Shown here: positions 7,538-35,611 of the stretch, one piece after another
Numbering within the stretch: the stretch's first letter is position 1
Layout of the letters: each line of letters starts with the position of its first letter
DNA from: Fimbriosthenelais zetlandica
Taxonomy: Eukaryota
NCBI GenBank assembly: GCA_977030845.1
Contig: OZ365110.1
Location: forward strand, 48,422,001-48,486,000
Direction: 5' to 3'
Length of the DNA: 64,000 nt
Made by a program: the position numbers and the translations under genes
Notes under the pieces: model-generated
What the model was told of the DNA's origin: nothing
The model's input: only the letters and a program-made list of their open reading frames with translations
Databases searched by the model: none

Positions 7538-10109
7538 CTGAAGTGATAACGACAAAAAATGAGAAATACAAAATATTTTTTTTTAACAAATCAAGGAGAT
7601 AAGGCAAAGGTTCTTTCCCGGAATCCAATTATACATAACATATTTATGGGCTTCATTGACGATGATGTAGCGAATGGCTCAGCAGGAACCGGCGCATTGA
7701 TCACTGTAAAGAGATAAACTCCATGGAGAAGAACAAAGCAGAATAGATTTAAAAGGGAAAGCTATATTTCAATTGGAAGATCTGGTTTTATTAAAATCCT
7801 GTTCTAATATTCTGGGAATTATGTATCAATATAGCAGGGGTTTTACCGCATTATATTTTACGATGTTGGAACTCTCTGCCAAGCAGTTGGGAAAAAGCTC
7901 TCACTCTCAAAGAGCCCTATCTGATAACTCCTCCGGCAAGAAGGAGAAATCACATGAGTATAAGCGGTACCATAAATGAAATTCACTAAACTTCTTAATC
8001 AAGTACAAAGGATCTCCACTATCCTTTTAGAATTGTAGTGCCAGGTAAAGGTGAAAGAGCAATTTATTATTTAACCTGGGGCCAGACTGGTTACATTGGG
8101 TTGTCCGCTTGGAACCCCTACAGACCAAACTAGGTTGCCAGCCCTATTGTCTATACCGTAAAGGCTCGCCTGGGCTCAAAAGCTTCAACTAAATTCATCA
8201 CTTATATAAAATATAACACTTAACGGGCCTTGTATTATTGTTCTAAGGGTTTCAAAGATACCATAGCCATTCAGTGATTGCCTCAGATAATAAGCTGGAG
8301 GTATGTCATACTAGGCTGCCTATACGCGTCAGTGCGGTATTGTATTGTGTATGCACGCCTACGCTTTGGCCTTCGGCCTCAATATGATGGATTGAAGCCA
8401 ATAGACTAGCACCACTTCTTCAAAATTGGTTCTCAGCTAGTCCCAACAAGGAAATCCCCCTGTATAAACCCGCTGAGAAAATTGCTTCGGGGTAAGAGAA
8501 AACGTCTCAATTCTCCCAGCAATGACCGGACCTACAGAACTCCCTCAATTGTCATTCCAAGTGGTTTAAGGAGTGAAAGGTAGAGAGAGGCTATCAAACC
8601 ATGTACTTGAGTGAGTCATGCCCCTGCTGGATCCCCGCGGCAGATCTATTCTTACACCCATGATATATCAATAATCGATAGCCAGGCAGACAGGAAGGCA
8701 ACACAGAGAAAAAAGCCTAGACAAGCTCAATGAATTTTGTTCAAATGTCCAATAATGAAAACTCCACCCAGGGTGTTCAATGTATGCAGTGAATCAATTG
8801 TACGAAATCCTAAACTTCAAAATAAAATAGATATTCAAAGGATGTGAATGGAAACATTGAGCACAATGAACAGTAATGGCCCGATGACAAGTTGGTCTAA
8901 TAGCCTTTGATATGATGAATACCGTATAATAGGAGGTTTGTTGGTTGTTCACATTCAGAAGGCTAAAAATGTAAGATGATCTTAAATAATAAGATATCCA
9001 TTCATCATATATATAGATCATCTCTACAACTATTAAAACGTAAAGTTCTAGGTACAGAAAGCATGGGTCCATAACATCCAGGATATGAGTAACGTGAAAT
9101 AAGAGACCTCCTTCAGCATTGTCAGCAGAAAAGTTTAATCACCTCCCACATCGTCTGTCCGTTTACTTCATAAACATATCATGTTCAAGGTGTTAAATGA
9201 GCACAGAAACATTATAACCGGGGACCCGGTTAATATAACAAAACTCTGCACCATTAACACACAAGTACCCAGAAGCTATTATACGTATGTAGGGAGGAAA
9301 ACAGAGTACATTTTTAAGGATATGGCCCCGTTGATTGAATACTGAGGATCGAATATTGGACCCCACTGTTCTGAAACCCCAGCATGATGGTCACTCAGAG
9401 GCAAGATAAGCATTTCAGTGAAACTGTCTCAGATGTGAACATCATCATCCAATAAGGGGGAAAGTTGATATGTAATAGGAGGCCATCCTGGCTAAATACC
9501 TGTATAATTTGGTGGTGCCTGAAACAATTAAGGATGTTAGAAATCAGATACACTACACATACCCTGTGCTCAGCATCCCTATACATATACATTACGATGC
9601 TAGTAGCCACTGAATATAGAAGCAACTGGACAGGTGCTTGTTCCCATGTGACAGCAGAAGCACAAACTGTGGTAGCATCTGACAGTAGGCTATGGCGAGT
9701 TCTGTGGATACCCCTCTTTGAACTCTTTGTTCCTTTGCGATATTAATTAATATGTATACAAGTAGATTTCCCACTTATGAATGCAATTATTGTTTTGCCT
9801 AATAAATGTTAATTGGAAGTTGGAGGGAGCTTGAGGGAGGTGCATCAATATTTACAGTCAGTATTAGGGCTTTTCATCTGAGGTGAATGGGCCTGCAGAG
9901 GCAATAGGGACAACTTCCAGACCTGTATACAAGTAGGCAGAGAGTCCATCTCAATACCAGGAAGGACCGCACTTCTATATAGGAAATAACTTATTCCTTT
10001 TACTTTACTTGGATTACAGAAACATTTTTAAAAAATTAATAAATTTCTAATGGCAATGAATATGTTTGAAATAAATGATAAAACTGATGAAATAAAAGAA
10101 GCAACTTAC

Positions 10110-13100
10110 TTGACTATAATGAAGAGCCATTTTGAACTTGTCGAAGTAAAGCCAGTTCCTGGCCTCATTCTGATCAAGATCATGGTAGCTGTCTCGGGCT
10201 GTGAAGCCGAATGAGTGGAAGGTTCCTTCAGGTGTCAAGAGCAGGCAGGTAGGGGTTTTTTGGTTAATTACTCCAGGATCGCCACCTTCCCATTTCCTCA
10301 TCATGTGAATGCTGTCGGGATCACGAGTAAAACTGAAAGCATACCCGCTAAATGTCGTACCAAAGTCAATGGCAACGACAACAAAGTGTGCTGTGGGCCT
10401 CGCAGGGTCTGAGCCTGTGCCAGAGTCTACGGAGCTTCTGTGACTGCGGGCCAGGGCACCATCGAAATGGATGTCACCAGGTCCGACAGCACTTTGGGAA
10501 CCTGGTGATTGCTGCAGGGGACTGCTGCTACTTTGTGTGACGGCAACTTCATTCTTTACAACCATTTGTGGTTGTCCTTCTACTTCTTGTGTGTGTTCTG
10601 TTTGAATTACATGTGATTCGCCATTTTCATCAATTTCTGTCCGTGTAGTACGCACAGTGACAACACGGTGACTAGAAATTTGTGATGTTATTGTCTGAAC
10701 TTCTCTCTGGAGACTGTGTTGTTCACCAGGTACTATATATTCTGTAGTTTCACTATGTGTCACACTTGCTGCAGTATCTAATTGTTCCGGTTGTGAAGTC
10801 GGTGAACCAGCAGTTGTTGGAATGGAAGTTGCGCGGGCAACTTTTTCAGGAGAATCTTCCTCCATAGGTACAAACTCCATGGATGCTGGTCCACCCTTGA
10901 AAGTTAGACTTCCTGAATCTGTTGGGCCTTTTGACCCATAGTCTTTATCCTCAGATTTTCTAGAGTCTATACTTGATGAATCATCACTTTTTCCTGATTC
11001 ACGTTTCTTTTTCTTTTTCTTTTTCTCTAATGTACTTTCCTTCTTTTTGTCTCTGCTAAACAAACCAAAGAATTTACTTCGGCTTGGACTTTTTGGTGGT
11101 TTGCTAGATTGGTCTTGATTTGGATCATCTTGTCCAACACTCACAGTAAGTCCAGGTGCTGATGCTTGAAGACCACTAGCTGATGACACTTTTATCACTT
11201 CTTCTGTTTCAGTCACAGTTACTCCAGGAGTACTCTCTGCACCAATATCGCCCTCCATTTTTAATCCTTTGATAACTAATTGGTCTGAATCTGTCACCTT
11301 TAAAAATTCTTCACTTCTCTCATTGAAAATTTTGTCTATATATTCTATTTGTTCTCGTTTTTCTTGAGTGTCTTCTACCACAGATACTTTTGGAACTGAG
11401 AACGTAGGACCTACTATTTGAACACCAGATGTTTTATCACTGTCACTTTCTGGCAACTCTTCTGTATGTACTTTTCCTGACAGTCCTTCTACTGTAAAGT
11501 CTGACTTTTCACTGTGACCTCCAAAATGCAAGGATGGAACTTCACCCTCCAAATGAAGGTCCTTTACACCCCTAAGTTCGGCCTCTGGTTGAGTATCTAA
11601 TGTTCCAACCTCGCCGGGAGCAAACTCACCCTTTTTGTGTTTGGAGAACTTAGGCAAGGAGATATGGGGCCCTTTGATCTTCCACCGAGAGTCTTTTTCC
11701 CTCTCTGCCCCAGGAAGGTCTACCTCAGCACTAAGATCAGCTTGCTCACTATCTGACTGTGGTAAAGAACTGTCTAAATTAATATCATATGAACCCTTCT
11801 TTCTGTTTTTGAATTTGCCAAAAGTCCTTGAGAAGAAACCAGTGGGTTCTTGCACTACTTCAGTATCACCAACAGCTATTTCGTTCTGTGGTTCAAGTGT
11901 TGATGACCTTACATCTACAGCATGGAGAGAAATATCTGTTTCACCAGAGTTAGTAACCCTCAATTTAGACTCACGACCTTTCACAGAGGTGTCAGTATCA
12001 AATGTAGGTTCTGTGATTTCAGGATCATGTCCAAATGTGATATCACTTGAGGGAAATTCAGCATCGGGAATGTCTGACCTCTTGCCACCCAATCTTCCTT
12101 TTATGCCACCTTCTATTTCTGGAATGTTTTTGACGTCTAGCTTAAAATCACCTTCCTTAATTATATCTGCATCATCAATAACTATTTCTCCCTGTCTATC
12201 ACTAGAAAGTTTGGGCAAAGATATATCAGGACCCCTAACCTTCCATCTGGGGCTTTTACCCTTGACTTTTATATCAGGTTCTTGAAGGTCTACGTCAGGT
12301 TTTCTGGGGGAATCTTTGCTCACTGAAATATCTAGATCTTCTGGGTACGGTTCAGCAGCATATTCATCATCACTAATAGAAACAGTGGGCTTCTTTCTTG
12401 AGAATCTTGGGAGACTGAATGATGGCCCCTTAATTTTCCACTTCCCACCCTTCAACTTTGGGGTTTCACCATCAACGTCAGGTCCTTCAACACTGATGTC
12501 TCCCTCTGGTAGTTCACCTTCAACACTGATGTCAGGCTTTTTGATATCTATGCCAGCTTTGGCACCGTAGGGTTCCTCGACAATGTCCACGTCTCCTACG
12601 CTTATTTCACCTTGGCCTTTACCTCCAAACTTGGGAAGGGAGAAGCTGGGAAGATTGATGCTAGGTCCCTTGAATCTCCACTTACGACCCTGCTTGTCAA
12701 CCTTGATGTCTGGACCTTCGATGTCAGCCTCAACTGGTTCAAATTCTCCCTCAAGTTCAGCGTCTGGGCCTTCAAATTCAGGTTTCTCTATTACAATCTC
12801 ACCCTGAGGCCCCTTACCACCAAACTTGGGAAGGGAGAAGCTGGGAAGATCGATGCTAGGTCCCTTGAATCTCCACTTGCGACCCTGCTTGTCAACTTTG
12901 ATGTCTGGTCCTTCGATGTCAGCCTCAACTGGTTCAAATTCTCCTTCAAGTTCAGCGTCAGGGCCTTCAAATTCTGGTTTCTCTATCACAATCTCACCTT
13001 GAGGTTTCTTGCCACCAAATTTGGGAAGAGAGAAGCTGGGGAGGCCAAAGCTAGGTCCCTTGAATCTCCACTTGCGACCTTTGGTGTCTACCTTTATGTC

Positions 13101-16100
13101 TGGTCCCTCTGCGTCAATATCCACAGGCTCAAACTCTCCTTGAAGTTCAGCGTCTGGACCCTCAAATTCAGGCTTCTCTACTTGAACATCAAATTTACCA
13201 CCATAAGGTTCCTGGACAATGTCAACGTCTCCAACAGAGATCTCTCCTTGAGGCTTCTTAGCACCAAACTTGGGAAGAGAAAAGCTGGGAAGATCAATGC
13301 TAGGCCCCTTGAATCTCCACTTGCGACCCTTCTTGTCAACTTTGATGTCTGGACCTTCAATATCAGCTTCCACTGGTTCAAATTCTCCCTCAAGTTCAGC
13401 GTCTGGACCTTCAAATTCTGGTTTCTCTATCACAATCTCACCTTGTGGTTTCTTGCCACCAAACTTGGGAAGAGAGAAGCTGGGGAGATCAATGCTAGGT
13501 CCCTTAAATCTCCACTTACGACCTTTCTTGTCAACTTTGATGTCTGGTCCTTCGATGTCTGCAGACACTGGTTCGAATTCTCCTTCAAGTCCAGCGTCTG
13601 GACCTTCAAATTCTGGTTTCTCTATGTCAATGTCTAGTTTGGCACCGTATGGCTCATGGACTACATCAACGTCACCTACGGCAATCTCTCCTTTTCCTTT
13701 CCTGCCAAACCTAGGAAGAGAGAAGCTTGGACCCTTGATGTGGGGGCCCTTGAATTTCCACTTTCCACCTTTGCCTTTTACTTTAGGTGCTTCTCCGTCA
13801 ATGTCAACGTCAGGTCCTTCAACACTGATGTCTCCCTCTGGTAGTTCACCTTCAACACTAATATCAGGCTTATTGATATCTATGCCAGCCTTTGCACCGT
13901 AGGGTTCCTTGACAATGTCCACGTCTCCTACGCTTATTTCACCTTGGCCTTTACCTCCAAACTTGGGAAGGGAGAAGCTGGGAAGATCGATGCTCGGTCC
14001 CTTGAACCTCCACTTACGACCCTTCTTGTCAACCTTGATGTCTGGACCTTCAATGTCAGCCTCGACTGGTTCAAATTCTCCCTCAAGTTCAGCGTCAGGA
14101 CCTTCAAATTCTGGTTTCTCTATGACAATCTCGCCTTGAGGTTTCTTGCCACCAAACTTGGGAAGTGAGAAGCTGGGGAGATCAATGCTAGGTCCCTTGA
14201 ATCTCCACTTACGACCTTTCTTGTCAACTTTGATATCTGGTCCTTCGATGTCTGCAGACACTGGTTCAAATTCTCCTTCAAGTTCAGCGTCTGGACCTTC
14301 AAATTCTGGTTTCTCTATGTCAACGTCTAGTTTGGCACCGTATGGCTCATGAACTACATCTACATCACCCACTGTGATCTCTCCTTTTCCTTTTCGACCA
14401 AACCTGGGAAGCGAGAAGCTTGGACCCTTGATGTGGGGGCCCTTGAATTTCCACTTTCCACCTTTGCCTTTTACTTTAGGTGCCTCTCCGTCAATATCAA
14501 CGTCAGGTCCTTCAACACTGATGTCTCCCTCTGGTAGTTCACCTTCAACACTAATGTCAGGCTTTTTGATATCTATGCCAGCTTTTCCACCGTAGGGTTC
14601 CTCGACAATGTCCACGTCTCCTACGCTTATTTCACCTTGGCCTTTACCTCCAAACTTGGGAAGGGAGAAGCTGGGGAGATTGATGCTAGGTCCCTTGAAT
14701 CTCCACTTACGACCGTGTTTGTCAACTTTGATGTCTGGACCTTCAATATCAGCCTCAACTGGTTCAAATTCTCCCTCAAGTTTAGCGTCTGGGCCTTCAA
14801 ATTCTGGTTTCTCTATCACAATCTCACCTTGAGGCTTTTTGCCACCAAACTTGGGAAGAGAGAAGCTGGGGAGGCCAAAGCTAGGTCCCTTGAATCTCCA
14901 CTTGCGACCTTTGGTGTCTACCTTTATATCTGGTCCCTCTGCATCAATATCCACAGGCTCAAACTCTCCTTGGAGTTCAGCGTCAGGACCCTCAAATTCA
15001 GGCTTCTCTACTTGAACATCAAATTTACCACCATAAGGTTCCTGGACAATGTCAACGTCTCCAACGGTGATCTCTCCTTGAGGCTTCTTACCACCAAACT
15101 TGGGAAGGGAGAAGCTAGGAAGGTCAATGCTAGGTCCCTTGAATCTCCACTTACGTCCCTGCTTGTCAACCTTAATGTCTGGACCTTCAATGTCAGCCTC
15201 AACTGGTTCGAATTCTCCCTCAAGTTCAGCGTCAGGGCCTTCGAATTCTGGTTTCTCTATCACAATCTCACCCTGAGGCTTCTTGCCACCAAATTTGGGA
15301 AGAGAAAAGCTGGGAAGATCAAAGCTAGGTCCCTTGAATCTCCACTTGCGACCGTGTTTGTCAACTTTGATATCTGGACCTTCAATGTCAGCCTCAACTG
15401 GTTCAAATTCTCCCTCAAGTTGAGCGTCAGGACCTTCAAATTCTGGTTTCTCTATCACAATTTCACCTTGTGGTTTCTTGCCACCAAACTTGGGAAGAGA
15501 GAAGCTGGGAAGATCAAAGCTAGGTCCCTTAAATCTCCACTTACGACCTTTCTTGTCAACTTTGATGTCTGGTCCTTCGATGTCTGCAGACACTGGTTCA
15601 AATTCTCCTTCAAGCTCAGCGTCTGGACCTTCAAATTCTGGTTTCTCTATGTCAACGTCTAGTTTGGCACCATATGGCTCATGAACTACATCCACATCAC
15701 CCACTGTGATCTCTCCTTTTCCTTTTCGACCAAACCTGGGAAGCGAGAAGCTTGGACCCTTGATGTGGGGGCCCTTGAATTTCCACTTTCCACCTTTGCC
15801 TTTTATTTTAGGTGCTTCTCCATCAATATCAACGTCAGGTCCTTCAACACTGATGTCTCCCTCTGGTAGTTCACCTTCAACACTAATGTCAGGTTTTTTG
15901 ATATCTATGCCAGCTTTGACACCATAGGGTTCCTCGACAATGTCCACGTCTCCTACGCTTACTTCACCTTGGCCTTTACCTCCAAACTTGGGAAGGGAGA
16001 AGCTGGGAAGATTGATGCTAGGTCCCTTGAATCTCCACTTACGACCCTGCTTGTCAACTTTGATGTCTGGACCTTCAATATCAGCCTCAACTGGTTCAAA

Positions 16101-19100
16101 CTCTCCCTCAAGTTCAGCGTCAGGGCCTTCAAATTCTGGTTTCTCTATCACAATCTCCCCTTGAGGTTTCTTGCCACCAAATTTAGGAAGTGAGAAGCTG
16201 GGAAGATTGATGCTAGGTCCCTTGAATCTCCACTTACGACCCTTCTTGTCAACTTTGATGTCTGGTCCTTCGATATCGGCAGACACTGGTTCAAATTCTC
16301 CTTCAAGTTCAGCGTCTGGACCTTCAAATTCTGGTTTCTCTATGTCAACGTCTAGTTTGGCACCGTATGGCTCATGGACTACATCCACATCACCCACTGT
16401 GATCTCTCCTTTTCCTTTCCTGCCAAACCGAGGAAGAGAGAAACTTGGACCCTTGATTTTCCACTTTCCACCTTTGCCTTTTACTTTAGGTGATTTTCCA
16501 TCAATGTCAACGTCAGGTCCTTCAACACTGATGTCTCCCTCTGGTAGTTCACCTTCAACACTAATATCAGGTTTTTTGATATCTAGGTCAGCCTTTGCAC
16601 CATAGGGTTCCTCGACAATGTCCACGTCTCCTACGCTTATTTCACCTTGGCCTTTGCCTCCAAACTTGGGAAGGGAGAAGCTGGGAAGATCGATGCTAGG
16701 TCCCTTGAATCTCCACTTACGACCTTTCTTGTCAACTTTGATGTCGGGCCCTTCGATGTCAGCCTCCACTGGTTCAAATTCTCCCTCAAGTTCAGCGTCT
16801 GGACCTTCAAATTCTGGTTTCTCTATCACAATCTCACCTTGTGGTTTCTTGCCACCAAACTTGGGAAGAGAAAAGCTGGGAAGATCAAAGCTAGGTCCCT
16901 TAAATCTCCACTTGCGACCCTTCTTGTCAACTTTGATGTCGGGCCCTTCAATGTCAGCCTCGACTGGTTCAAATTCTCCTTCAAGCTCAGCGTCTGGACC
17001 TTCAAATTCTGGTTTCTCAATCACAATCTCACCTTGAGGCTTTTTGCCACCAAACTTGGGAAGAGAGAAGCTGGGGAGGCCAAAGCTAGGTCCCTTGAAT
17101 CTCCACTTGCGACCTTTGGTGTCTACCTTTATATCTGGTCCCTCTGCATCAATATCCACAGGCTCAAACTCTCCTTGGAGTTCTGCGTCCGGACCCTCAA
17201 ATTCAGGCTTCTCTACTTGAACATCAAATTTACCACCATAAGGTTCCTGGACAATGTCAACGTCTCCAACAGTGATCTCTCCTTGAGGCTTCTTACCACC
17301 AAACTTGGGAAGAGAAAAGCTGGGAAGATCAAAGCTAGGTCCCTTGAATCTCCACTTACGACCCTTCTTGTCAACTTTGATGTCTGGACCTTCAATATCA
17401 GCCTCAACTGGTTCAAATTCTCCCTCAAGTTCAGCATCAGGGCCTTCAAATTCTGGTTTCTCTATCACAATTTCACCCTGAGGTTTCTTGCCACCAAACT
17501 TGGGAAGTGAGAAGCTGGGAAGATCAAAACTAGGTCCCTTGAATCTCCACTTGCGACCCTTCTTGTCAACTTTGATGTCTGGACCTTCAATATCAGCCTC
17601 AACTGGTTCAAATTCTCCCTCAAGTTCAGCGTCAGGGCCTTCAAATTCTGGTTTCTCTATCACAATTTCACCCTGAGGTTTCTTGCCACCAAACTTGGGA
17701 AGTGAGAAGCTGGGAAGATCAAAACTAGGTCCCTTGAATCTCCACTTGCGACCCTTCTTGTCAACTTTGATGTCTGGTCCTTCGATGTCTGCAGACACTG
17801 GTTCAAATTCTCCTTCAAGTTCAGCGTCAGGGCCTTCAAATTCTGGTTTCTCTATCACAATTTCACCCTGAGGTTTCTTGCCACCAAACTTGGGAAGTGA
17901 GAAGCTGGGAAGATCAAAACTAGGTCCCTTGAATCTCCACTTACGACCTTTCTTGTCAACTTTTATATCTGGTCCTTCGATGTCTGCAGATACTGGTTCA
18001 AATTCTCCTTCAAGCTCGGCGTCTGGACCTTCAAATTCTGGTTTCTCTATGTCAACGTCTAGTTTGGCACCGTATGGCTCATGAACTACATCCACATCAC
18101 CTACTGTGATCTCTCCTTTTCCTTTTCGACCAAACCTGGGAAGCGAGAAACTTGGACCCTTGATGTGGGGGCCCTTGAATTTCCACTTTCCACCTTTGCC
18201 TTTTACTTTAGGTGCTTCTCCGTCGATATCAACGTCAGGTCCTTCAACACTGATGTCTCCCTCTGGTAGTTCACCTTCAACACTAATGTCAGGTTTTTTG
18301 ATATCTATGCCAGCTTTGGCGCCGTAGGGTTCCTCGACAATGTCCACGTCTCCTACGCTTACTTCACCTTGACCTTTACCTCCAAACTTGGGAAGGGAGA
18401 AGCTGGGAAGATTGATGCTAGGTCCCTTGAATCTCCACTTACGACCTTTCTTATCAACTTTGATGTCTGGACCTTCAATATCAGCCTCGACTGGTTCAAA
18501 TTCTCCCTCAAGTTCAGCGTCAGGGCCTTCAAATTCTGGTTTCTCTATCACTATCTCACCTTGAGGTTTCTTGCCACCAAATTTGGGAAGAGAAAAGCTG
18601 GGAAGATCAAAGCTAGGTCCCTTAAATCTCCATTTACGACCTTTCTTGTCAACTTTGATGTCTGGTCCTTCGATGTCTGCAGACACTGGTTCAAATTCTC
18701 CTTCAAGCTCGGCGTCTGGACCTTCAAATTCTGGCTTCTCTATGTCAACGTCTAGTTTGGCACCATATGGCTCATGGACTACATCCACATCACCCACTGT
18801 GATCTCTCCTTTTCCTTTACGGCCAAACCTAGGAAGAGAGAAGCTCGGACCCTTAATTTTCCACTTTCCACCTTTGCCTTTTACTTTAGGTGCTTTTCCA
18901 TCAATATCAACGTCAGGACCTTCAACACTGATGTCTCCCTCTGGTAGTTCACCTTCAACACTAATGTCAGGTTTTTTGATATCTATGCCAGCTTTGGCGC
19001 CGTAGGGTTCCTCAACAATGTCCACGTCTCCTACGCTTATTTCACCTTGACCTTTACCTCCAAACTTGGGAAGGGAGAAGCTGGGAAGGTTGATGCTAGG

Positions 19101-22100
19101 TCCCTTGAATCTCCACTTACGACCCTGCTTGTCAACCTTGATATCTGGACCTTCGATGTCAGCCTCAACTGGTTCAAATTCTCCCTCGAGTTCAGCGTCT
19201 GGACCTTCAAATTCTGGTTTCTCTATCACAATCTCACCCTGAGGTTTCTTGCCACCAAACTTGGGAAGAGAGAAGCTGGGGAGGCCAAAGCTAGGTCCCT
19301 TGAATCTCCACTTACGTCCCTGCTTGTCAACTTTGATGTCTGGACCTTCGATGTCAGCCTCAACTGGTTCAAATTCTCCCTCAAGTTCAGCGTCTGGACC
19401 TTCAAATTCTGGTTTCTCTATCACAATCTCACCTTGAGGCTTCTTGCCCCCAAACTTGGGGAGAGAAAAGCTGGGAAGATCAAAGCTAGGTCCCTTGAAT
19501 CTCCACTTACGTCCCTTCTTGTCAACCTTAATGTCTGGACCTTCGATATCAGCCTCAACTGGTTCAAATTCTCCCTGAAGTTCAGCGTCTGGACCTTCAA
19601 ATTCTGGTTTCTCTATCACAATCTCACCTTGAGGCTTCTTGCCACCAAACTTGGGAAGAGAGAAGCTGGGGAGGCCAAAGCTAGGTCCCTTGAATCTCCA
19701 CTTGCGACCTTTGGCGTCTACCTTTATGTCTGGTCCCTCTGCGTCAATATCCACAGGCTCAAACTCTCCTTGGAGTTCTGCGTCTGGACCCTCAAATTCA
19801 GGCTTCTCTACTTCAACATCAAATTTACCACCATAAGGTTCCTGGACAATGTCAACGTCTCCAACGGTGATTTCTCCTTGAGGCTTCTTGCCACCAAACT
19901 TGGGAAGGGAGAAGCTAGGAAGGTCAATGCTCGGTCCCTTGAATCTCCACTTACGACCCTTCTTGTCAACCTTAATATCTGGACCTTCAATGTCAGCCTC
20001 AACTGGTTCAAATTCTCCCTCAAGTTCAGCGTCAGGGCCTTCAAATTCTGGTTTCTCTATCACAATCTCACCCTGAGGTTTCTTGCCACCAAACTTGGGA
20101 AGAGAAAAGCTGGGAAGATCAAAGCTAGGACCCTTGAATCTCCACTTACGACCCTTCTTGTCGACTTTGATGTCTGGTCCTTCGATGTCAGCCTCAACTG
20201 GTTCAAATTCTCCCTCAAGTTCAGCGTCTGGACCTTCAAATTCTGGTTTCTCTATCACAATCTCACCTTGAGGTTTCTTTCCACCAAACTTGGGAAGAGA
20301 AAAGCTGGGAAGATCAAAGCTAGGACCCTTGAATCTCCACTTACGACCTTTCTTGTCAACTTTTATATCTGGTCCTTCGATGTCTGCAGATACTGGTTCA
20401 AATTCTCCTTCAAGCTCGGCGTCTGGACCTTCAAATTCTGGTTTCTCTATGTCAACGTCTAGTTTGGCTCCGTATGGCTCATGAACTACATCTACATCAC
20501 CTACTGTGATCTCTCCTTTTCCTTTTCGACCAAACCTGGGAAGCGAAAAGCTTGGACCCTTGATGTGGGGGCCCTTGAATTTCCACTTTCCACCTTTGCC
20601 TTTTACTTTAGGTGCCTCTCCGTCGATATCAACGTCAGGTCCTTCAACACTGATGTCTCCCTCTGGTAGTTCACCTTCAACACTAATGTCAGGTTTTTTG
20701 ATATCTATGCCAGCTTTGGCACCGTAGGGTTCCTCAACAATGTCCACGTCTCCTACGCTTATTTCACCTTGACCTTTACCTCCAAACTTGGGAAGGGAGA
20801 AGCTGGGAAGATTGATGCTAGGTCCCTTGAATCTCCACTTACGACCTTTCTTGTCAACTTTGATGTCAGGACCTTCAATATCAGCCTCAACTGGTTCAAA
20901 TTCTCCTTCAAGTTCAGCGTCAGGGCCTTCAAATTCTGGTTTCTCTATCACAATCTCACCTTGAGGTTTCTTGCCACCAAATTTGGGAAGAGAGAAGCTG
21001 GGAAGATCAATGCTAGGTCCCTTGAATCTCCACTTACGACCCTTCTTGTCAACTTTGATGTCTGGTCCTTCGATGTCTGCAGACACTGGTTCGAATTCTC
21101 CTTCAAGCTCAGCGTCTGGACCTTCAAATTCTGGTTTCTCTATGTCAACGTCTAGTTTGGCACCATACGGTTCATGGACTACATCCACATCACCCACTGT
21201 GATCTCTCCTTTTCCTTTACGTCCAAACCTAGGAAGAGAGAAGCTTCCCCCCTTGAAGTTGGGGCCCTTGAATTTCCACTTTCCACCTTTGCCTTTTACT
21301 TTAGGTGATTTTCCATCAATATCAACATCAGGTCCTTCAACACTGATGTCTCCCTCTGGTAGTTCACCTTCAACACTAATGTCAGGCTTTTTGATATCTA
21401 TGCCAGCTTTTCCACCGTAGGGTTCCTCAACAATGTCCACGTCTCCTACGCTTATTTCACCTTGGCCTTTACCTCCAAACTTGGGAAGGGAGAAGCTGGG
21501 AAGATTGATGCTAGGTCCCTTGAATCTCCACTTACGACCCTGCTTGTCTACCTTGATGTCTGGACCTTCAATGTCAGCCTCAACTGGTTCAAATTCTCCC
21601 TCAAGTTCAGCGTCTGGACCTTCAAATTCTGGTTTCTCTATCACAATCTCACCTTGAGGTTTCTTGCCACCAAACTTGGGAAGAGAAAAACTGGGAAGAT
21701 CAAAGCTAGGTCCCTTGAATCTCCACTTGCGACCCTTCTTGTCAACCTTAATGTCTGGACCTTCGATATCAGCCTCAACTGGTTCAAATTCTCCCTCAAG
21801 TTCAGCGTCTGGACCTTCAAATTCTGGTTTCTCTATCACAATCTCACCCTGAGGTTTCTTGCCACCAAACTTGGGAAGAGAAAAGCTGGGAAGACTAAAG
21901 CTAGGTCCCTTGAATCTCCACTTACGACCCTGCTTGTCAACTTTGATGTCTGGACCTTCAATATCAGCCTCAACTGGTTCAAACTCTCCTTCAAGTTCAG
22001 CGTCTGGACCTTCAAATTCTGGTTTCTCTATCACAATCTCACCTTGAGGTTTCTTGCCACCAAATTTGGGAAGAGAGAAGCTGGGGAGGCCAAAGCTAGG

Positions 22101-25100: not shown

Positions 25101-28100
25101 TCCCTTGAATCTCCACTTGCGACCTTTGGTGTCTACCTTTATGTCTGGTCCCTCTGCGTCAATATCCACAGGCTCAAACTCACCTTTGAGTTCTGCGTCT
25201 GGACCCTCAAATTCAGGCTTCTCTACCTGAACATCAAATTTACCACCATAAGGTTCCTGAACAATGTCAACGTCTCCAACAGTGATCTCTCCTTGAGGCT
25301 TCTTGCCACCAAACTTAGGAAGGGAGAAGCTAGGAAGGTCAATGCTAGGTCCCTTGAATCTCCACTTGCGTCCCTTCTTGTCAACCTTAATATCAGGACC
25401 TTCGATGTCAGCCTCAACTGGTTCAAATTCTCCCTCAAGTTCAGCGTCTGGACCTTCGAATTCTGGTTTCTCTATCACAATCTCACCCTGAGGCTTCTTG
25501 CCACCAAATTTGGGAAGAGAAAAGCTAGGAAGATCAAAGCTAGGTCCCTTGAATCTCCACTTACGACCCTTCTTGTCAACTTTGATGTCTGGTCCTTCGA
25601 TGTCAGCCTCAACTGGTTCAAATTCTCCCTCAAGTTCAGCGTCTGGACCTTCGAATTCTGGTTTCTCTATCACAATCTCACCCTGAGGCTTCTTGCCACC
25701 AAATTTGGGAAGTGAGAAGCTGGGAAGATCAAAGCTAGGTCCCTTGAATCTCCACTTACGACCTTTCTTGTCAACTTTGATGTCTGGTCCTTCGATGTCT
25801 ACAGACACTGGTTCAAATTCTCCTTCAAGCTCAGCGTCTGGACCTTCAAATTCTGGTTTCTCTATGTCAACGTCTAGTTTGGCACCATACGGTTCATGGA
25901 CTACATCCACATCACCCACTGTGATCTCTCCTTTTCCTTTACGGCCAAACCTGGGAAGCGAGAAGCTTGGACCCTTGATGTGGGGGCCCTTGAATTTCCA
26001 CTTTCCACCTTTGCCTTTTACTTTAGGTGCTTCTCCATCGATATCAATGTCAGGTCCTTCAGCACTGATGTCTCCCTCTGGTAGTTCACCTTCAACACTA
26101 ATGTCAGGTTTTTTGATATCTATGCCAGCTTTGGCACCGTAGGGTTCCTCGACAATGTCCACGTCTCCTACGCTTATTTCACCTTGACCTTTACCTCCAA
26201 ACTTGGGAAGGGAGAAGCTAGGAAGATCAAAGCTAGGTCCCTTGAATCTCCACTTACGACCCTTCTTGTCAACTTTGATGTCTGGTCCTTCGATGTCAGC
26301 CTCAACTGGTTCAAATTCTCCCTCAAGTTCAGCGTCTGGACCTTCGAATTCTGGTTTCTCTATCACAATCTCACCTTGAGGTTTCTTGCCACCAAACTTG
26401 GGAAGAGAGAAGCTGGGAAGATCAAAGCTAGGTCCCTTAAATCTCCACTTACGACCTTTCTTGTCAACTTTGATGTCTGGTCCTTCGATGTCTGCAGACA
26501 CTGGTTCGAATTCTCCTTCAAGCTCAGCGTCTGGACCTTCAAATTCTGGTTTCTCTATGTCAACGTCTAGTTTGGCACCATACGGTTCATGGACTACATC
26601 CACATCACCCACTGTGATCTCTCCTTTTCCTTTACGTCCAAACCTAGGAAGAGAGAAGCTTCCTCCCTTGAAGTGGGGGCCCTTGAATTTCCACTTTCCA
26701 CCTTTGCCTTTTACTTTAGGTGATTTTCCATCAATATCAACGTCAGGTCCTTCAACACTGATGTCTCCCTCTGGTAGTTCACCTTCAACACTAATATCAG
26801 GCTTTTTGATATCTATGCCAGCCTTTGCCCCATAGGGTTCCTCAACAATGTCCACATCTCCAACGCTTATTTCACCTTGGCCTTTACCTCCAAACTTGGG
26901 AAGGGAGAAGCTGGGAAGATTGATGCTAGGTCCCTTGAATCTCCACTTACGACCCTGCTTGTCAACCTTGATGTCTGGACCTTCGATGTCAGCCTCAACT
27001 GGTTCAAATTCTCCTTCAAGTTCAGCGTCTGGACCTTCAAATTCTGGTTTCTCTATCACAATCTCACCTTGGGGCTTCTTTCCACCAAACTTGGGAAGAG
27101 AAAAGCTGGGAAGATCAAAGCTAGGTCCCTTAAATCTCCACTTACGACCCTGCTTGTCAACTTTGATGTCTGGACCTTCGATGTCAGCCTCAACTGGTTC
27201 AAATTCTCCCTCAAGTTCAGCGTCTGGACCTTCAAATACTGGTTTCTCTATCACAATCTCACCTTGGGGCTTCTTTCCACCAAACTTGGGAAGAGAAAAG
27301 CTGGGAAGGCCAAAGCTAGGTCCCTTGAATCTCCACTTACGTCCCTGCTTGTCAACTTTAATATCTGGACCTTCGATATCAGCCTCAACTGGTTCAAATT
27401 CTCCCTCAAGTTCAGCGTCTGGACCTTCAAATTCTGGTTTCTCTATGACAATCTCACCTTGGGGCTTCTTTCCACCAAACTTGGGAAGAGAAAAGCTGGG
27501 AAGGCCAAAGCTAGGTCCCTTGAATCTCCACTTACGTCCCTGCTTGTCAACTTTAATATCTGGACCTTCGATATCAGCCTCAACTGGTTCAAATTCTCCC
27601 TCAAGTTCAGCGTCTGGACCTTCGAATTCTGGTTTCTCTATGACAATCTCACCTTGGGGCTTCTTTCCACCAAACTTGGGAAGAGAAAAGCTGGGAAGAC
27701 CAAAGCTAGGTCCCTTGAATCTCCACTTACGACCCTTCTTGTCAACTTTGATGTCTGGTCCTTCGATGTCAGCCTCAACTGGTTCAAATTCTCCCTCAAG
27801 TTCAGCGTCTGGACCTTCAAATTCTGGTTTCTCTATCACGATCTCACCTTGGGGCTTCTTTCCACCAAACTTGGGAAGAGAGAAGCTGGGGAGATCAAAG
27901 CTAGGTCCCTTGAATCTCCACTTACGACCTTTCTTGTCAACTTTGATGTCTGGTCCTTCGATGTCTGCAGACACTGGTTCAAATTCTCCCTCAAGTTCAG
28001 CGTCTGGACCTTCAAATTCTGGTTTTTCTATGTCAACGTCTAGTTTGGCACCATATGGCTCATGGACTACATCCACATCACCCACTGTGATCTCTCCTTT

Positions 28101-31100
28101 TCCTTTACGACCAAACCTTGGAAGCGAGAAGCTTGGACCCTTGATATGGGGGCCCTTGAATTTCCACTTTCCACCTTTGCCTTTTACTTTAGGTGCTTTT
28201 CCATTGATATCAACGTCAGGTCCTTCAACACTGATGTCTCCCTCTGGTAGTTCACCTTCAACACTAATGTCAGGCTTTTTGATATCTATATCAGCTTTGC
28301 CACCATAGGGTTCCTCAACAATGTCTACGTCTCCTATGCTTACTTCACCTTGGCCTTTACCTCCAAACTTGGGAAGGGAGAAGCTGGGAAGATTGATGCT
28401 AGGTCCCTTGAATCTCCACTTACGACCCTTCTTGTCAACTTTGATATCTGGACCTTCGATGTCTGCTTCAACTGGTTCAAAGTCTCCCTCAAGTCCAGCG
28501 TCTGGACCTTCAAATTCTGGTTTCTCTATCACAATCTCCCCTTGAGGTTTCTTTCCACCAAACTTGGGAAGAGAGAAGCTGGGGAGATCAAAGCTAGGTC
28601 CCTTGAATCTCCACTTGCGACCCTGCTTGTCAACTTTGATGTCTGGTCCTTCGATGTCTGCAGACACTGGTTCAAATTCTCCTTCAAGTTCAGCGTCTGG
28701 ACCTTCAAATTCTGGTTTCTCTATCACAATCTCACCTTGAGGTTTCTTGCCACCAAACTTGGGAAGAGAGAAGCTGGGGAGGCCAAAGCTAGGTCCCTTG
28801 AATCTCCACTTGCGACCTTTGGTGTCTACCTTTATGTCTGGTCCCTCTGCATCAATATCCACAGGCTCAAACTCTCCTTGGAGTTCAGCGTCAGGACCCT
28901 CAAATTCAGGCTTCTCTACTTGAACATCAAATTTACCACCATAAGGTTCCTGGACAATGTCAACGTCTCCAACGGTGATCTCTCCTTGAGGCTTCTTACC
29001 ACCAAACTTGGGAAGGGAGAAGCTAGGAAGGTCAATGCTAGGTCCCTTGAATCTCCACTTACGGCCCTTTTTATCAACTTTGATGTCTGGACCTTCAATG
29101 TCAGCCTCAACTGGTTCAAATTCTCCTTCTAGTTCAGCGTCAGGACCTTCAAATTCTGGCTTCTCAATAACAATTTCACCCTGAGGCTTCTTTCCACCAA
29201 ACTTAGGGAGAGAGAAGCTGGGAAGATCAAAGCTAGGTCCCTTGAATCTCCACTTACGACCTTTCTTGTCAACTTTGATGTCTGGTCCTTCGATGTCGGC
29301 AGACACTGGTTCAAATTCTCCTTCAAGCTCAGCGTCTGGACCTTCAAATTCTGGTTTCTCTATGTCAACGTCTAGTTTGGCACCATATGGCTCATGGACT
29401 ACATCCACATCACCCACTGTGATCTCTCCTTTTCCTTTACGTCCAAACCTAGGAAGCGAGAAGCTTGGACCCTTGATGTGGGGGCCCTTGAATTTCCACT
29501 TTCCACCTTTGCCTTTTACTTTAGGTGCTTTTCCATCAATATCAACGTCAGGTCCTTCAACACTGATGTCTCCCTCTGGTAGTTCACCTTCAACACTAAT
29601 GTCAGGCTTTTTGATATCTATGCCAGCTTTGCCACCATAGGGTTCCTCAACAATGTCTACGTCTCCTACGCTTACTTCACCTTGGCCTTTACCTCCAAAC
29701 TTGGGAAGGGAGAAGCTAGGAAGATTGATGCTAGGTCCCTTGAATCTCCACTTACGACCCTCCTTGTCAACCTTGATGTCTGGACCTTCAATGTCAGCCT
29801 CAACTGGTTCAAATTCTCCTTGAAGCTCAGCGTCTGGACCTTCAAATTCTGGTTTCTCTATCACAATCTCACCTTGAGGTTTCTTGCCACCAAATTTAGG
29901 AAGAGAGAAACTGGGGAGGCCAAAGCTAGGTCCCTTGAATCTCCACTTACGACCCTGCTTGTCAACTTTGATGTCTGGTCCTTCAATGTCAGCCTCAACT
30001 GGTTCAAATTCTCCTTCAAGCTCAGCGTCTGGACCTTCAAATTCTGGTTTCTCTATCACAATCTCACCTTGAGGTTTCTTGCCACCAAATTTGGGAAGAG
30101 AGAAGCTGGGGAGGCCAAAGCTAGGTCCCTTGAATCTCCACTTGCGACCTGTGGTGTCTACCTTTATGTCTGGTCCCTCTGCATCAATATCCACAGGCTC
30201 AAACTCTCCTTGGAGTTCAGCGTCAGGACCCTCAAATTCAGGCTTCTCTACTTTAACATCAAATTTACCACCATAAGGTTCCTGGACAATGTCAACGTCT
30301 CCAACAGTGATCTCTCCTTGATGCTTCTTGCCACCAAACTTAGGAAGGGAGAAGCTAGGAAGGTCAATGCTAGGTCCCTTGAATCTCCACTTACGGCCCT
30401 TCTTGTCAACTTTGATGTCTGGACCTTCAATGTCAGCCTCAACTGGTTCAAATTCTCCTTCAAGTTCAGCGTCAGGACCTTCAAATTCTGGCTTCTCAAT
30501 AACAATTTCACCCTGAGGCTTCTTTCCACCAAACTTAGGGAGAGAGAAGCTGGGAAGATCAAAGCTAGGACCCTTGAATCTCCACTTACGACCTTTCTTG
30601 TCAACTTTGATGTCTGGTCCTTCGATGTCGGCAGACACTGGTTCAAATTCTCCTTCAAGCTCAGCGTCTGGACCTTCAAATTCTGGTTTCTCTATGTCAA
30701 CGTCTAGTTTGGCACCGTATGGCTCATGAACTACATCTACATCACCCACTGTGATCTCTCCTTTTCCTTTTCGACCAAACCTGGGAAGCGAGAAGCTTGG
30801 ACCCTTGATGTGGGGCCCCTTGAATTTCCACTTTCCACCTTTGCCTTTTACTTTAGGTGCTTTTCCATCAATATCAACGTCAGGTCCTTCAACACTGATG
30901 TCTCCCTCTGGTAGTTCACCTTCAACACTAATGTCAGGTTTTTTGATATCTATGCCAGCTTTGGCGCCGTAGGGTTCCTCAACAATGTCCACATCTCCTA
31001 CACTTACTTCACCTTGGCCTTTACCTCCAAACTTGGGAAGGGAGAAGCTGGGAAGATTGATGTTAGGTCCCTTGAATCTCCACTTACGACCCTTCTTGTC

Positions 31101-34100
31101 AACTTTGATATCTGGACCTTCGATGTCTGCCTCAACTGGTTCAAATTCTCCCTCAAGTTCAGCGTCTGGACCTTCAAATTCTGGTTTCTCTATCACAATC
31201 TCACCCTGAGGTTTCTTGCCACCAAACTTGGGAAGAGAGAAGCTGGGGAGGCCAAAGCTAGGTCCCTTGAATCTCCACTTGCGACCCTGCTTGTCAACTT
31301 TGATGTCGGGCCCTTCAATGTCAGCCTCGACTGGTTCAAATTCTCCTTCAAGCTCAGCATCTGGACCTTCAAATTCTGGTTTCTCTATCACAATCTCACC
31401 TTGAGGTTTCTTGCCACCAAACTTGGGAAGAGAGAAGCTGGGGAGGCCAAAGCTAGGTCCCTTGAATCTCCACTTGCGACCTTTGGTGTCTACCTTTATA
31501 TCTGGTCCCTCTGCGTCAATATCCACAGGCTCAAACTCACCTTTGAGTTCTGCGTCAGGACCCTCAAATTCAGGCTTCTCTACTTTAACATCAAATTTAC
31601 CACCATAAGGTTCCTGGACAATGTCAACGTCTCCAACAGTGATCTCTCCTTGATGCTTCTTGCCACCAAACTTAGGAAGGGAGAAGCTAGGAAGGTCAAT
31701 GCTAGGTCCCTTGAATCTCCACTTACGGCCCTTTTTATCAACTTTGATGTCTGGACCTTCAATGTCAGCCTCAACTGGTTCAAATTCTCCTTCTAGTTCA
31801 GCGTCAGGACCTTCAAATTCTGGCTTCTCAATAACAATTTCACCCTGAGGCTTCTTTCCACCAAACTTAGGGAGAGAGAAGCTGGGAAGATCAAAGCTAG
31901 GTCCCTTGAATCTCCACTTACGACCCTTCTTGTCAACTTTGATATCTGGTCCTTCGATGTCTGCAGACACTGGTTCAAATTCTCCTTCAAGCTCAGCGTC
32001 AGGGCCTTCAAATTCTGGTTTCTCTATGTCAACGTCTAGTTTGGCACCATATGGCTCATGGACTACATCCACATCACCCACTGTGATCTCTCCTTTTCCT
32101 TTACGGCCAAACCTGGGAAGCGAGAAGCTTGGACCCTTGATGTGGGGGCCCTTGAATTTCCACTTTCCACCTTTGCCTTTTACTTTAGGTGCTTTTCCAT
32201 CAATATCAACGTCAGGTCCTTCAACACTGATGTCTCCCTCTGGTAGTTCACCTTCAACACTAATGTCAGGCTTTTTGATATCTATGCCAGCTTTTCCACC
32301 GTAGGGTTCCTCGACAATGTCTACGTCTCCTACGCTAACTTCACCTTGGCCTTTACCTCCAAACTTGGGAAGGGAGAAGCTGGGAAGATTGATGCTAGGT
32401 CCCTTGAATCTCCACTTACGACCCTTCTTGTCAACTTTGATGTCTGGACCTTCGATGTCTGCAGACACTGGTTCAAACTCTCCTTCAAGTTCAGCGTCTG
32501 GGCCTTCAAATTCAGGTTTCTCTATCACAATCTCACCCTGAGGTTTCTTGCCACCAAATTTAGGAAGAGAAAAGCTGGGAAGATTGATGCTAGGTCCCTT
32601 GAATCTCCACTTTCGACCCTGCTTGTCAACTTTGATGTCAGGCCCTTCAATGTCAGCCTCAACTGGTTCAAATTCTCCCTCAAGCTCAGCGTCTGGACCT
32701 TCAAATTCTGGTTTCTCTATCACAATCTCACCTTGAGGCTTCTTGCCACCAAACTTGGGAAGAGAGAAGCTGGGGAGGCCAAAGCTAGGTCCCTTGAATC
32801 TCCACTTGCGACCTTTGGTGTCTACCTTTATGTCTGGTCCCTCTGCATCAATATCCACAGGCTCAAACTCTCCTTGGAGTTCTGCGTCCGGACCCTCAAA
32901 TTCAGGCTTCTCTACTTTAACATCAAATTTACCACCATAAGGTTCCTGGACAATGTCAACGTCTCCAACAGTGATCTCTCCTTGATGCTTCTTGCCACCA
33001 AACTTAGGAAGGGAGAAGCTAGGAAGATCAAAGCTAGGTCCCTTGAATCTCCACTTACGGCCCTTCTTGTCAACTTTGATGTCTGGACCTTCGATGTCAG
33101 CCTCAACTGGTTCAAATTCTCCCTCAAGTTCAGCGTCTGGACCTTCAAATTCTGGTTTCTCTATCACAATCTCACCCTGAGGTTTCTTGCCACCAAACTT
33201 GGGAAGGGAGAAGCTAGGAAGGTTAATGCTAGGTCCCTTGAATCTCCACTTACGACCTTTCTTGTCAACTTTGATATCAGGACCTTCAATATCTGCAGAC
33301 ACTGGTTCAAATTCTCCTTCAAGATCAGCGTCTGGACCTTCAAATTCAGGCTTTTCCACTGTAACATCTACTTTCGCCCCATATGGCTCATGTACTACAT
33401 CAACATCCCCTACTGTAATCTCTCCCTTTCTTTTCCGTCCGAAACTTGGCAGAGAAAAAGTTGGAGCTTTCCAATGGGGACCTTTAATTCGCCACTTACG
33501 TCCTGAGGAATCGACTTTTATGTCTGATCCTTCTGCTTCTGGATGTACTTCTTCTAATTCTCCTGAATCGCTTCCTTCTGCATGTATTTCAGCTGTGCCC
33601 TCAACCTTTCTCTTTCGCACATGTGGAAGTGAAAAACTTGGCCCTTTTACTTTCAAATTTGGCTCATCAGCATCCACTGAAAGCTCAGCGTCTGAAGGTG
33701 TTCCTGAACTTCCTTTCTTGGCTTTACCTTTTCCAAACGCCCTTGAGATAAATCCAGTTGATTCTTCAACAATTTGTGTATCACCTATAATAAACTCTCC
33801 TTGTTTCCCTCTTGGAATTTTTGCTTTCGGTCCAGTGATATCATCTTCATCATCAGAGATGTTTATATCCACTTCACCTTCTAAACTAGGTAATTCTTCA
33901 CCGTGAAGTTTTATGTCACTCTTTTGCCGTTCAGCTTTTGCAGCTTTTATCTTGGGTTCTGCAGCAATGTCAGGGGATTCTTCTCGATCCAAGTGGATAT
34001 TACCTGAAGTATCTGTTGATGCTGAACTTTTCCTCTTCTTTTCCTTCTTCTTTTTCTTCTTGAAAAGGGAGAACTTTCCACCAGAGGCTTTTCCTTCAGT

Positions 34101-35401
34101 CGATGATGCAGTATCAAAATCTAATGACCTGTCTGGTGTTTCAACTTCAAGTGACGTGTCAGGATTCACGCTAGGACTCCTTGATCTGATGGTAACAACC
34201 TTCTCGTAACTAATGGTAGCTTCGCCTTCTGCTGTTTGTTCAGTGACTACACTTATAACCTTTCTATAAGTTTTTGCAACAATTAAATCTTCTTGAACTT
34301 CTGTCGATTCATATGATGCATCTAAATCAGCCGACGCCAACCTACTAGAACGGTCCGTAGAATCTGATTCTGAACGTCTTTTTCTTCTCCTTTCAAGGGT
34401 CCTTGACAATGTCCCTGTCCTTTCCTGAACAACTGATGTATCTCCTAGAACTACTTCTCCCTTGTTTGTAGAAATGGGTAGTTCAAATCCTCTGGAGAGA
34501 CGGTCAGGAGATGTAATGACAATCTTTGGTTTGTCTCCAGCTGATAAACTTCTTCTTTTTCGATCACTACTGCTGCTTCTACTTCGATTGCTACTACTGG
34601 AAGAACTAGATCTGCTTCTTCCTTTGTTTGTCTCCTTTCTTTTCTTATGCTTTTTATCATGTGTATCAACAGATATCTGAGAACTTATGGCCGGATCTTC
34701 TGATTGTGCACCAAACGCAGCTGATACCCCAGGAGATTTTACCTCAAAAGCTGCTGCCCCATGTTCGTCATCTATGTTTGCCGGAGTTTCAATTCTTTCT
34801 TTTGTTACAAAATGTTCGGTAATGTCTCCTGTTGGTATGCCCTCATCAACACGTAAAATTTCTGTTTGTTCTTCTGTTGTTGTCTTCCCGTCCTTTTCTA
34901 ATGTATGTTTTTCTTTTATTACAGAAACAGTGGAGCTTTCCTCTGCTGTACCATCTGGGCCCACTCCAAACTGTGTTAGATCAAGGTCTCCTAGCCCACC
35001 TGAAACCTCAACAACTCTTTTGTGAGATACGTGATGAGTTGTTTCTGTTTTTGAGGTTTCCTCAACGGTCCTGCCAGAAGCTCCAAAAGAGAATCCAGGA
35101 AGGCTTACTTCTCCTTCACCAAAGTGTATGTCGCTGCTGAGGCCAGATGCTTCCCCAGACCCAGTTACTTGTTTTCTCTCAGTGACGATGACGCTCTGCT
35201 CTGATTGACTTGTTATCTCACTTCTTTCTGATTCAGTTTCATATGCTGTGCTACTGCTTGTTATGTGAGAATCAGAGACAGTGTCTGTAGTTGCTCCAAA
35301 TTTGAGCTCCAAGTCATCTGGGTTTACTGAAACACCGAAGGATTCATCTGGAACGGTTACCTTCGAATCAGCTTCGGATGTTTCTTTGAAAGACTCTCCA
35401 C
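10110..35401 (-). CDS. HSPA12: Giant coding exon (25,292 bp, phase 1 to phase 0): acidic/Ser-rich N-region, ~7,000-aa AHNAK/periaxin-like repeat array, linker, and N-terminal part of an HSPA12 (atypical Hsp70) nucleotide-binding domain
   Basis: Uninterrupted ORF (track 10047..35450). Acceptor tattttccag|GT GGA GAG at 35402/35401; donor AGT CAA|gtaagt at 10110/10109. Length is 2+3x8430. The C-terminal end [90 protein letters not shown] matches the HSPA12 N-lobe, including the Hsp70 phosphate-1 motif. Confidence 0.92.
12393..33431 (-). repeat. Coding tandem repeat array: 96 modules (52 A of 195 bp, 17 B of 252/237 bp, 17 C of 246 bp, 10 D of 249 bp), AHNAK/periaxin-like
   Basis: Manual parse of the translation. 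Module lengths reproduce the spacings of landmark sites (195, 1332, 2805, 2610, 2400, 2400, 2025 bp). The shared core [49 protein letters not shown] resembles AHNAK/PRX repeats (EGPDV.I, K.K.P.FS.P motifs). Confidence 0.95.
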
Positions 35402-35611
35402 CTGGAAAATATAAAGAGTATTCTTGGTAAGAAGTTAGAACAATTGGCAATGTTTCCTGGTATATCTAACAAAATATATACATAGCATAGAACATTAATA
35501 ATATTAAGGGAGATTAGCTTAACTGAAACAATGAGAACAAAAGGTTGCGTTCAAATCTCTTTTCCATAGTGTTAAATCATATAAATAAATATATTTTACT
35601 TTCTCCCTTTC

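Follow-up and report, generated by a model that had tools for sequence, protein, structure and literature searches.

Introduction

Known relatives of the gene studied here include the vertebrate proteins HSPA12A and HSPA12B, divergent Hsp70-type ATPases of ~680 amino acids (aa) with an N-terminus of ~50-60 aa and no repeat tail. They are encoded by 12 coding exons, and a survey published in 2008 found HSPA12 in vertebrates only (PMC2266713). A metazoan analysis of 2025 took Hsp70-12 as a protein of ~74 kDa, and its motifs were defined as DxGTT, EPxAA and GGGT (PMC12692333). A second point of comparison is AHNAK, a membrane and cortex scaffold whose gene has one giant coding exon with small exons on either side (PMC10682155, from which the defining features of the AHNAK family are taken here). 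We describe a locus in a 64,000-nucleotide (nt) stretch of DNA from Fimbriosthenelais zetlandica (contig OZ365110.1, positions 48,422,001 to 48,486,000; hereafter the window, numbered from 1), in which a giant, largely repetitive exon reads in frame into an HSPA12 ATPase. The best explanation, which we consider probable, is an extended HSPA12 gene that makes one giant tail-ATPase polypeptide with a tether function. In the literature searched, no paper linked HSPA12 with an AHNAK-type architecture or described extensions of invertebrate HSPA12.

Results

Giant exon and its reading frame

The minus strand of the window contains an open reading frame (ORF) of 8,467 codons (10047..35450) without a stop, a run that cannot be due to chance; the window holds no N and no masked bases. 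When the splice sites were read again, both ends of the giant exon came out identical to those given in the preliminary description (10110-35401). The acceptor consists of a polypyrimidine tract and an AG immediately upstream of 35401 (...TTTTCCAG, followed by the first exonic G; phase 1), and the donor at 10110 is in phase 0. Beyond this donor the ORF runs on to a stop at 10047-10049, 21 codons into intron 1. The parts of the exon are listed in Table 1. At the end of the ORF, the frame passes from the linker straight into the HSPA12 phosphate-1 motif, and the earlier claim that array and ATPase are linked within one stop-free exon is borne out. At least 8,714 aa of coding sequence lie inside the window, and the gene continues past its left edge.

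Table 1. Coordinates of the features of the extended HSPA12 gene in the window.
Feature	Position	Strand	Description
Giant coding exon	10110..35401	-	25,292 nt, ~8,431 aa; acceptor AG, donor CAA/GTAAGT
Unique N-terminal region	33498..35401	-	~634 aa, Ser/Thr- and charge-rich, no Cys or Met
Repeat array	12248..33497	-	~97 regular modules of 65-84 aa; last modules degenerate
Unique linker, array to ATPase	10389..12247	-	~620 aa
Start of HSPA12 nucleotide-binding domain, phosphate-1 motif AIDFGTT	10110..10388	-	83% identical to P0001 segment
HSPA12 exon 2	7316..7537	-	phases 0/0; 74% identity with P0205 residues 680-751
HSPA12 exon 3, EPEAA motif (LEPEAAS)	6839..7052	-	ends in phase 1
Candidate cassette exon	5634..5879	-	246 nt, 82 aa, Pro/Ser/Thr-rich, AG/GT, phase 1 at both ends
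HSPA12 exon 4, phosphate-2 motif DCGGGTVD	3891..4016	-	tblastn with P0205, splice sites
HSPA12 exon 5	3426..3628	-	76% identical to P0205 residues 861-928
HSPA12 exon 6	1216..1302	-	tblastn with P0205, splice sites

The downstream exons were located by tblastn with a spliced relative, P0205, and their ends were read off the sequence. P0205 is an ORF of 1,187 aa on a spliced 3.9-kb Logan contig, comprising a 580-aa extension, a related linker and a complete HSPA12. Five downstream exons were recovered, all with GT-AG boundaries and in compatible phases (0/0, 0/1, 1/1, 1/0 and 0/0). Together with the last part of the giant exon, they form a stop-free spliced sequence of 1,209 nt (403 aa), in whose product DxGTT (AIDFGTT), EPxAA (LEPEAAS) and GGxT (DCGGGTVD) occur in order. 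Six further HSPA12 exons had been claimed; the sixth is only a candidate cassette, probably 5879-5634. It falls between exons 3 and 4, where relatives have a variable-loop site, and no counterpart was found in spliced P0205 or the other relatives. The alignment reaches residue 957 of the 1,187 in P0205, which places the final ~230 aa of HSPA12 beyond position 1 of the window.

Identity and placement of the ATPase

The 403-aa product is 68% identical to P0205, 67% to a Lingula protein annotated as 'heat shock 70 kDa protein 12A', 65% to the protein of the annelid Owenia, 63% to that of the nemertean Lineus and 62% to Ixodes HSPA12A. Identity to HSPA12B of fish and birds ranges from 56 to 65% (bird, 63% over 287 aa). 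In a maximum-likelihood tree of 20 sequences, the window falls into a spiralian clade (support 94/96) whose other members come from bryozoans, brachiopods, annelids, nemerteans and molluscs; within this clade it is unplaced. Cnidarian, ambulacrarian and mollusc groups were recovered, and the tree broadly follows the species tree. The preliminary description had set the gene in a vertebrate frame, which does not hold, as both the identity ranking and the tree place the ATPase part with spiralians; a vertebrate origin of the gene is ruled out on the same two grounds. Judged by sequence comparison, the gene is a single-copy-type HSPA12 orthologue of spiralian and probably annelid origin.

The Pfam HSP70 model (PF00012) matched neither the exons nor the full-length relatives P0205 and P0212; this model is blind to the HSPA12 subfamily. 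When a full-length relative was compared by sequence with the PDB, no related protein of solved structure was retrieved.

The repeat array and the N-terminal region

The anchor motif [RK]W[RK][FIV][KR]GP occurs 99 times in the product of the giant exon; besides the ~97 regular modules of the array, there is a degenerate anchor near 11687. The array of the preliminary description is thus confirmed with a different count, 96 modules having been claimed. Spacings between anchors are 65 aa (53 times), 84 (16), 82 (15), 83 (10), 77 (twice), 80 and 187 aa. In the first part of the array, the spacings follow a strict 82-65-83-65-65-84 order that makes up a higher-order unit of 444 aa, and Tandem Repeats Finder reported periods of 195 and 444 nt. 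The 25-kb size of the 5' coding exon is the result of tandem amplification of the 65-84-aa module.

In every module, an acidic Pro/Gly-rich block comes after a basic/aromatic one, and within each module the net charge swings from about +5 to -7 (15-residue sliding window). Over the whole exon product, 36% of the residues are charged, with a net charge of about -460, no Cys and almost no Met. Prediction of one 444-aa higher-order repeat with AlphaFold2 gave a mean predicted local distance difference test (pLDDT) score of 32 and no fold to search, in a single-sequence run for which low confidence is weak evidence of disorder. Together with the blocky charge, this prediction is consistent with a disordered tail, and the long disordered scaffold proposed earlier agrees with repeats that are predicted to lack a stable fold.

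The array is under protein-level selection in the HSPA12 frame, that is, it is coding, because the differences between repeat copies fall mostly at third codon positions (66-79% across module classes). For the 65-aa module (53 copies), third positions account for 76% of the nucleotide differences, and synonymous codon differences outnumber nonsynonymous ones by 17,271 to 4,950 (~3.5:1). The same codon-position test on the repeat copies ruled out a satellite artefact.

The G+C content is ~0.38-0.41 in the flanking sequence and climbs to ~0.46 between 12 and 34 kb, where strand skew is strong. Apart from the giant frame, every ORF of at least 150 aa in the window is on the plus strand within the repeats. 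Opposite the array, 16 plus-strand ORFs of 188-547 aa (11635-33906) mirror the repeat periodicity; most simply, these are by-products of a biased, repeated coding strand and not genes.

A Pfam scan of the N-terminal region (first 700 aa), the repeats, the linker and each ATPase exon gave nothing significant.

Independent assemblies

Relatives were sought in two ways. One search covered very long proteins only, with the linker and the beginning of the ATPase as the scored part; the other was an exhaustive search of representative proteins that returned 1,644 matches. Two unannotated loci of the same organization were obtained, L001 from the former and L002 from the latter search (samples ERZ26222911 and ERZ25767047). 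L001, on a 316-kb ENA contig, encodes P0001, an ORF of 4,785 aa with a related N-region (32% identity), its own AHNAK-like array and a linker that is 49% identical to that of the window over 360 aa. The residues at its junction are identical to those of the window and are followed by a GT donor at the same codon; the exon starts at an AG acceptor. L002, on a 3.6-Mb contig and from the closest relative, encodes P0002 (3,596 aa), whose modules are very like those of the window. Upstream of P0002 lies an ORF of 2,755 aa, which starts with an N-region (46% identity to that of the window over ~700 aa) and continues into the array. Between these ORFs there are ~760 nt of repeat with repeated frameshifts (L002 9238-10001), which are probably consensus errors in the repeats and, less likely, real decay.

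The order N-region, array, linker and ATPase is common to the three independent assemblies, the window included, and a misjoin is excluded on this account.

Linker and junction

Besides P0001, the linker is common to P0002, to the annelid Paralvinella (P0046/P0211) and to transcript P0205. Including the stretch just before the ATPase domain, its closest matches are in the annelids Owenia and Paralvinella. A basic/hydrophobic patch at ~10974-11111 (minus strand) is kept in P0001 and P0002. Variants of this patch were observed in Paralvinella (KKKYHFFTFKKSE, repeated) and in other relatives, sometimes as repeats.

Fourteen residues upstream of the ATPase domain, the linker carries the motif DSGTGS (10410-10427, minus strand). 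A DSGxx[ST] motif 15-20 residues upstream of the ATPase was found in 54 of the 174 homologues fetched, including those of Hydra, Clytia, spiders, brachiopods and annelids, and was absent from the fish and bird sequences examined. This motif matches the consensus of a phosphodegron.

Likeness to AHNAK and periaxin

A repeat profile was built from the 59 distinct modules of the window and scored against each target and, as control, against 20 shuffles of it. Summed scores reached 1,836 bits on P0002, 193-206 bits on shark and frog AHNAK isoforms, 119 bits on P0148 (4,565 aa) and 48 bits on P0001, compared with 0-6 bits (all below 7) on shuffled targets. On AHNAK, the matches recur at intervals of 64-66 residues and span almost all of the profile; both the K.K.KGP...P.F.LPK block and the following ..GPD.. 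block are matched. No single module scored above ~20 bits, and the bias corrections were very large. Since the true orthologue P0001 scores below AHNAK, such arrays appear to change fast.

The layout of the gene is also shared, as AHNAK, AHNAK2 and periaxin likewise have a giant exon between small exons, with thousands of residues of tandem modules in which basic/hydrophobic stretches alternate with acidic Pro/Gly-rich ones and a profile-level similarity at a period of ~65 aa. The modules differ in size, being 65-84 aa in the window versus 128 aa in AHNAK or 165 aa in AHNAK2. Moreover, the AHNAK-type C-terminal domain of ~1,000 aa is not present in the window gene, where the HSPA12 ATPase takes its place. 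A phmmer comparison of the linker with AHNAK of frog and shark gave no match, and the unique N-region likewise shows no similarity to AHNAK. As the preliminary description had stated, there is no sign of a PDZ domain: Pfam found none in the first 700 aa of the giant exon, the start exon(s) being unseen. The AHNAK-like character claimed for the protein is therefore retained for the repeat pattern, with its summed score of ~200 bits, and does not extend to demonstrated homology, given single modules of at most ~20 bits and an N-region and linker unlike AHNAK. From its sequence, the predicted protein is not a member of the AHNAK family and resembles AHNAK in repeat pattern and gene layout only.

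Long N-terminal extensions of invertebrate HSPA12

In many of the 1,644 representative matches, the ATPase starts far from the N-terminus. Extensions of ~300-2,500 aa that run into the HSPA12 phosphate-1 motif are found in NCBI automatic annotations from cnidarians to hemichordates. Among named HSPA12-type proteins, lengths are 943 aa in Hydra and 1,060 in Clytia (cnidarians); 1,017 in Owenia fusiformis, 913 in Lineus, 1,053 in Lingula anatina and 919 in Watersipora; 1,575-1,595 in Haliotis and 1,608 in Pinctada (molluscs); ~1,100 in ticks, 1,300-1,700 in spiders and 1,450-1,820 in decapods; 1,628 in Ptychodera flava and 2,806 in Patiria miniata; and 2,982-3,099 in crinoids, where Anneissia japonica has the longest (3,099 aa). 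Many extended HSPA12 proteins carry misleading names, such as 'serine-rich adhesin for platelets-like' (Haliotis) and, in others, 'apomucin', 'mucin-2-like' or 'titin-like'.

The ATPase of these proteins is the same orthologue as that of the window (59-68% identity), and as in the window a low-complexity extension leads straight into the phosphate-1 motif, in many cases with a DSGxxS-type motif beside the ATPase domain; the linker is shared with the window by annelids. In contrast, the extension in the window is 3 to 25 times longer and contains ~99 near-identical modules, and its repeat module has no profile match in any named invertebrate HSPA12 protein. HSPA12A and HSPA12B of vertebrates share the DxGTT, EPxAA and GGGT motifs and 56-65% identity over the part of the ATPase that lies in the window, and are unlike the window gene in their short N-terminus. 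Taken together, sequence comparisons indicate that a long N-terminal extension on HSPA12 is ancestral in animals and that vertebrates are the short-tailed exception. The architecture had been presented as previously undescribed. What is new here is only the AHNAK-like array and its size; the general extended architecture is already in the databases, annotated in many invertebrate phyla.

Six long HSPA12 proteins of echinoderms, molluscs, brachiopods and hemichordates (P0089, P0077, P0237, P0215, P0262 and P0267) have in common a short motif at the N-terminus, in which ..Y[ED]V[NS].. precedes (T)PGK[FY]R[PK]L; this suggests that these proteins may have a conserved first exon. This motif was sought in the 64-kb window and not found.

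Discussion

Proposed product and function

The main product of the gene would be one polypeptide of ~9,000 aa or more, comprising in order the short 5' exon(s), the 634-aa unique region, ~99 modules, the 620-aa linker and, at the end, the ATPase and C-terminal domain of HSPA12. Its tail would be an unfolded polyampholyte with blocky charge, in which each module pairs a basic/aromatic with an acidic patch. Clusters of Lys/Arg with Phe/Trp are typical of electrostatic contacts to acidic membranes or to the cortex, as in AHNAK and MARCKS-type proteins. The effector segments of the latter resemble the window modules and the linker patch in that Lys/Arg clusters are interleaved with Phe/Trp; there is no sequence relationship, and the basic block is here repeated ~99 times, each time with an acidic block. 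From the paired patches along the tail we infer a tether function: the tail is most likely a very long multivalent tether that would hold a nucleotide-regulated HSPA12 at membranes, at the cortex or in a self-associating network. The ~99 basic/aromatic clusters in series could provide very high avidity and, if extended, micrometre reach.

Acidic clusters in the tail of SorLA are recognized by the C-terminal part of human HSPA12A, and the interaction is stronger in ADP than in ATP (PMC6345817). Because the human protein binds acidic clusters in this nucleotide-dependent way, it may be speculated, by analogy, that the ~99 acidic blocks are bound by the protein's own C-terminal domain, within or between molecules. 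Such self-binding would make the assembly nucleotide-switchable. A bolder proposal, to which we give little weight, is that AHNAK-type repeats predate vertebrates, first served as a tether of HSPA12 and share ancestry with the vertebrate arrays; the C-terminal domain would then act on the ~99 acidic blocks of its own tail to form an ATP-switchable, self-associating cortical scaffold of ~1 MDa.

Alternative explanations

We give next to no credence to the explanation that the junction is an assembly misjoin or that the array is a non-coding satellite, open by chance. Repeat arrays are error-prone in assemblies, and the array of L002 is broken by the frameshifts at 9238-10001; against this, the same junction with identical flanking residues is present in the three independent assemblies, it lies ~2 kb from the array in unique sequence, and a third-position bias of 66-79% accompanies 8,467 codons without a stop. 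It is also unlikely that the locus makes separate products, namely an AHNAK-like protein that ends in intron 1 and an HSPA12 of ~700-1,300 aa from an internal or alternative promoter, with the fused giant rare or absent. The absence of any in-frame stop between array and ATPase in all three species argues against separate products, as do the conservation of the linker as protein, the perfect GTAAGT donor and the relative's transcript P0205, in which extension and ATPase are joined; in favor of separate products are the reading of the ORF past the donor to the stop at 10047-10049, a predicted abalone isoform that starts within the extension and the short N-termini of vertebrate HSPA12A/B. Quite unlikely, in our estimate, is true homology, as opposed to convergence, between the repeats and those of vertebrate AHNAK/periaxin, by way of gene fission or exon capture. 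The summed scores of 195-206 bits on frog and shark AHNAK versus 0-6 on shuffles, the tiling at ~64-66 aa over nearly the full profile and the giant exon between small exons in both genes (PMC10682155) count for such homology; against it, single modules reach ~20 bits at most and require very large bias corrections. Furthermore, the orthologous array of P0001 (48 bits) scores below AHNAK, a sign that the arrays change fast and are able to converge; the unique regions show no relation to AHNAK, and no PDZ domain was found.

Several observations weigh against the reading as one giant tail-ATPase polypeptide with a tether function. At least one upstream start exon is required because the first ~700 aa of the giant exon product contain no Met. 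No credible candidate was found among the open frames of at least 60 aa listed in 35.3-64 kb, no credible match to the N-terminal motif ..GK[FY]R[PK]L of molluscs, brachiopods and deuterostomes was found in the window, and tblastn against the window with the N-termini of 12 relatives likewise gave none. At the other end, the window does not include the C-terminal third of HSPA12. Confirmation of the full gene model is limited to this window: intron 1 is 2.6 kb here, and exon 2 was not detected within 10 kb downstream in L001 (24359-34358) or L002 (20792-30791), which indicates longer introns in those loci. An internal promoter or acceptor inside the giant exon may yield short HSPA12 isoforms, and the NCBI-predicted abalone isoform P0192 has an alternative start inside the extension. 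To these are added the single-sequence nature of the disorder prediction and a functional model based on composition and analogy. A second abalone record, P0193 (591 aa), was considered as a natural short isoform and rejected, since it starts at an internal Met past the phosphate-1 motif and is a truncated record.

Significance

A product of ~9,000 aa or more would far exceed the other HSPA12-type proteins returned by the searches, the longest named being the 3,099-aa crinoid protein. Papers treat HSPA12 as a ~74-kDa protein, whereas most animal phyla carry a long disordered N-terminal tail. The biochemical role of HSPA12 is poorly understood, and a tail resembling a membrane or cortex tether suggests, in a form that can be tested, where the ATPase may act. 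For the question of how AHNAK and periaxin arose, an AHNAK-like repeat pattern found beyond the vertebrates is a point of comparison. In automatic annotation, a gene of this kind is likely to be split or truncated by gene callers.

Other features of the window

An Rfam scan of the whole window gave no match. Between ~52000 and 55000, local G+C is ~0.41-0.43 and minus-strand open frames contain poly-Pro and poly-Thr runs; this segment might be a candidate promoter or 5' exon region of the gene. In the intron ~190 nt upstream of the giant-exon acceptor lies a 75-nt tandem satellite (35591-36626) of ~14 copies at 94% identity, for which periods of 154 and 229 nt were also scored.

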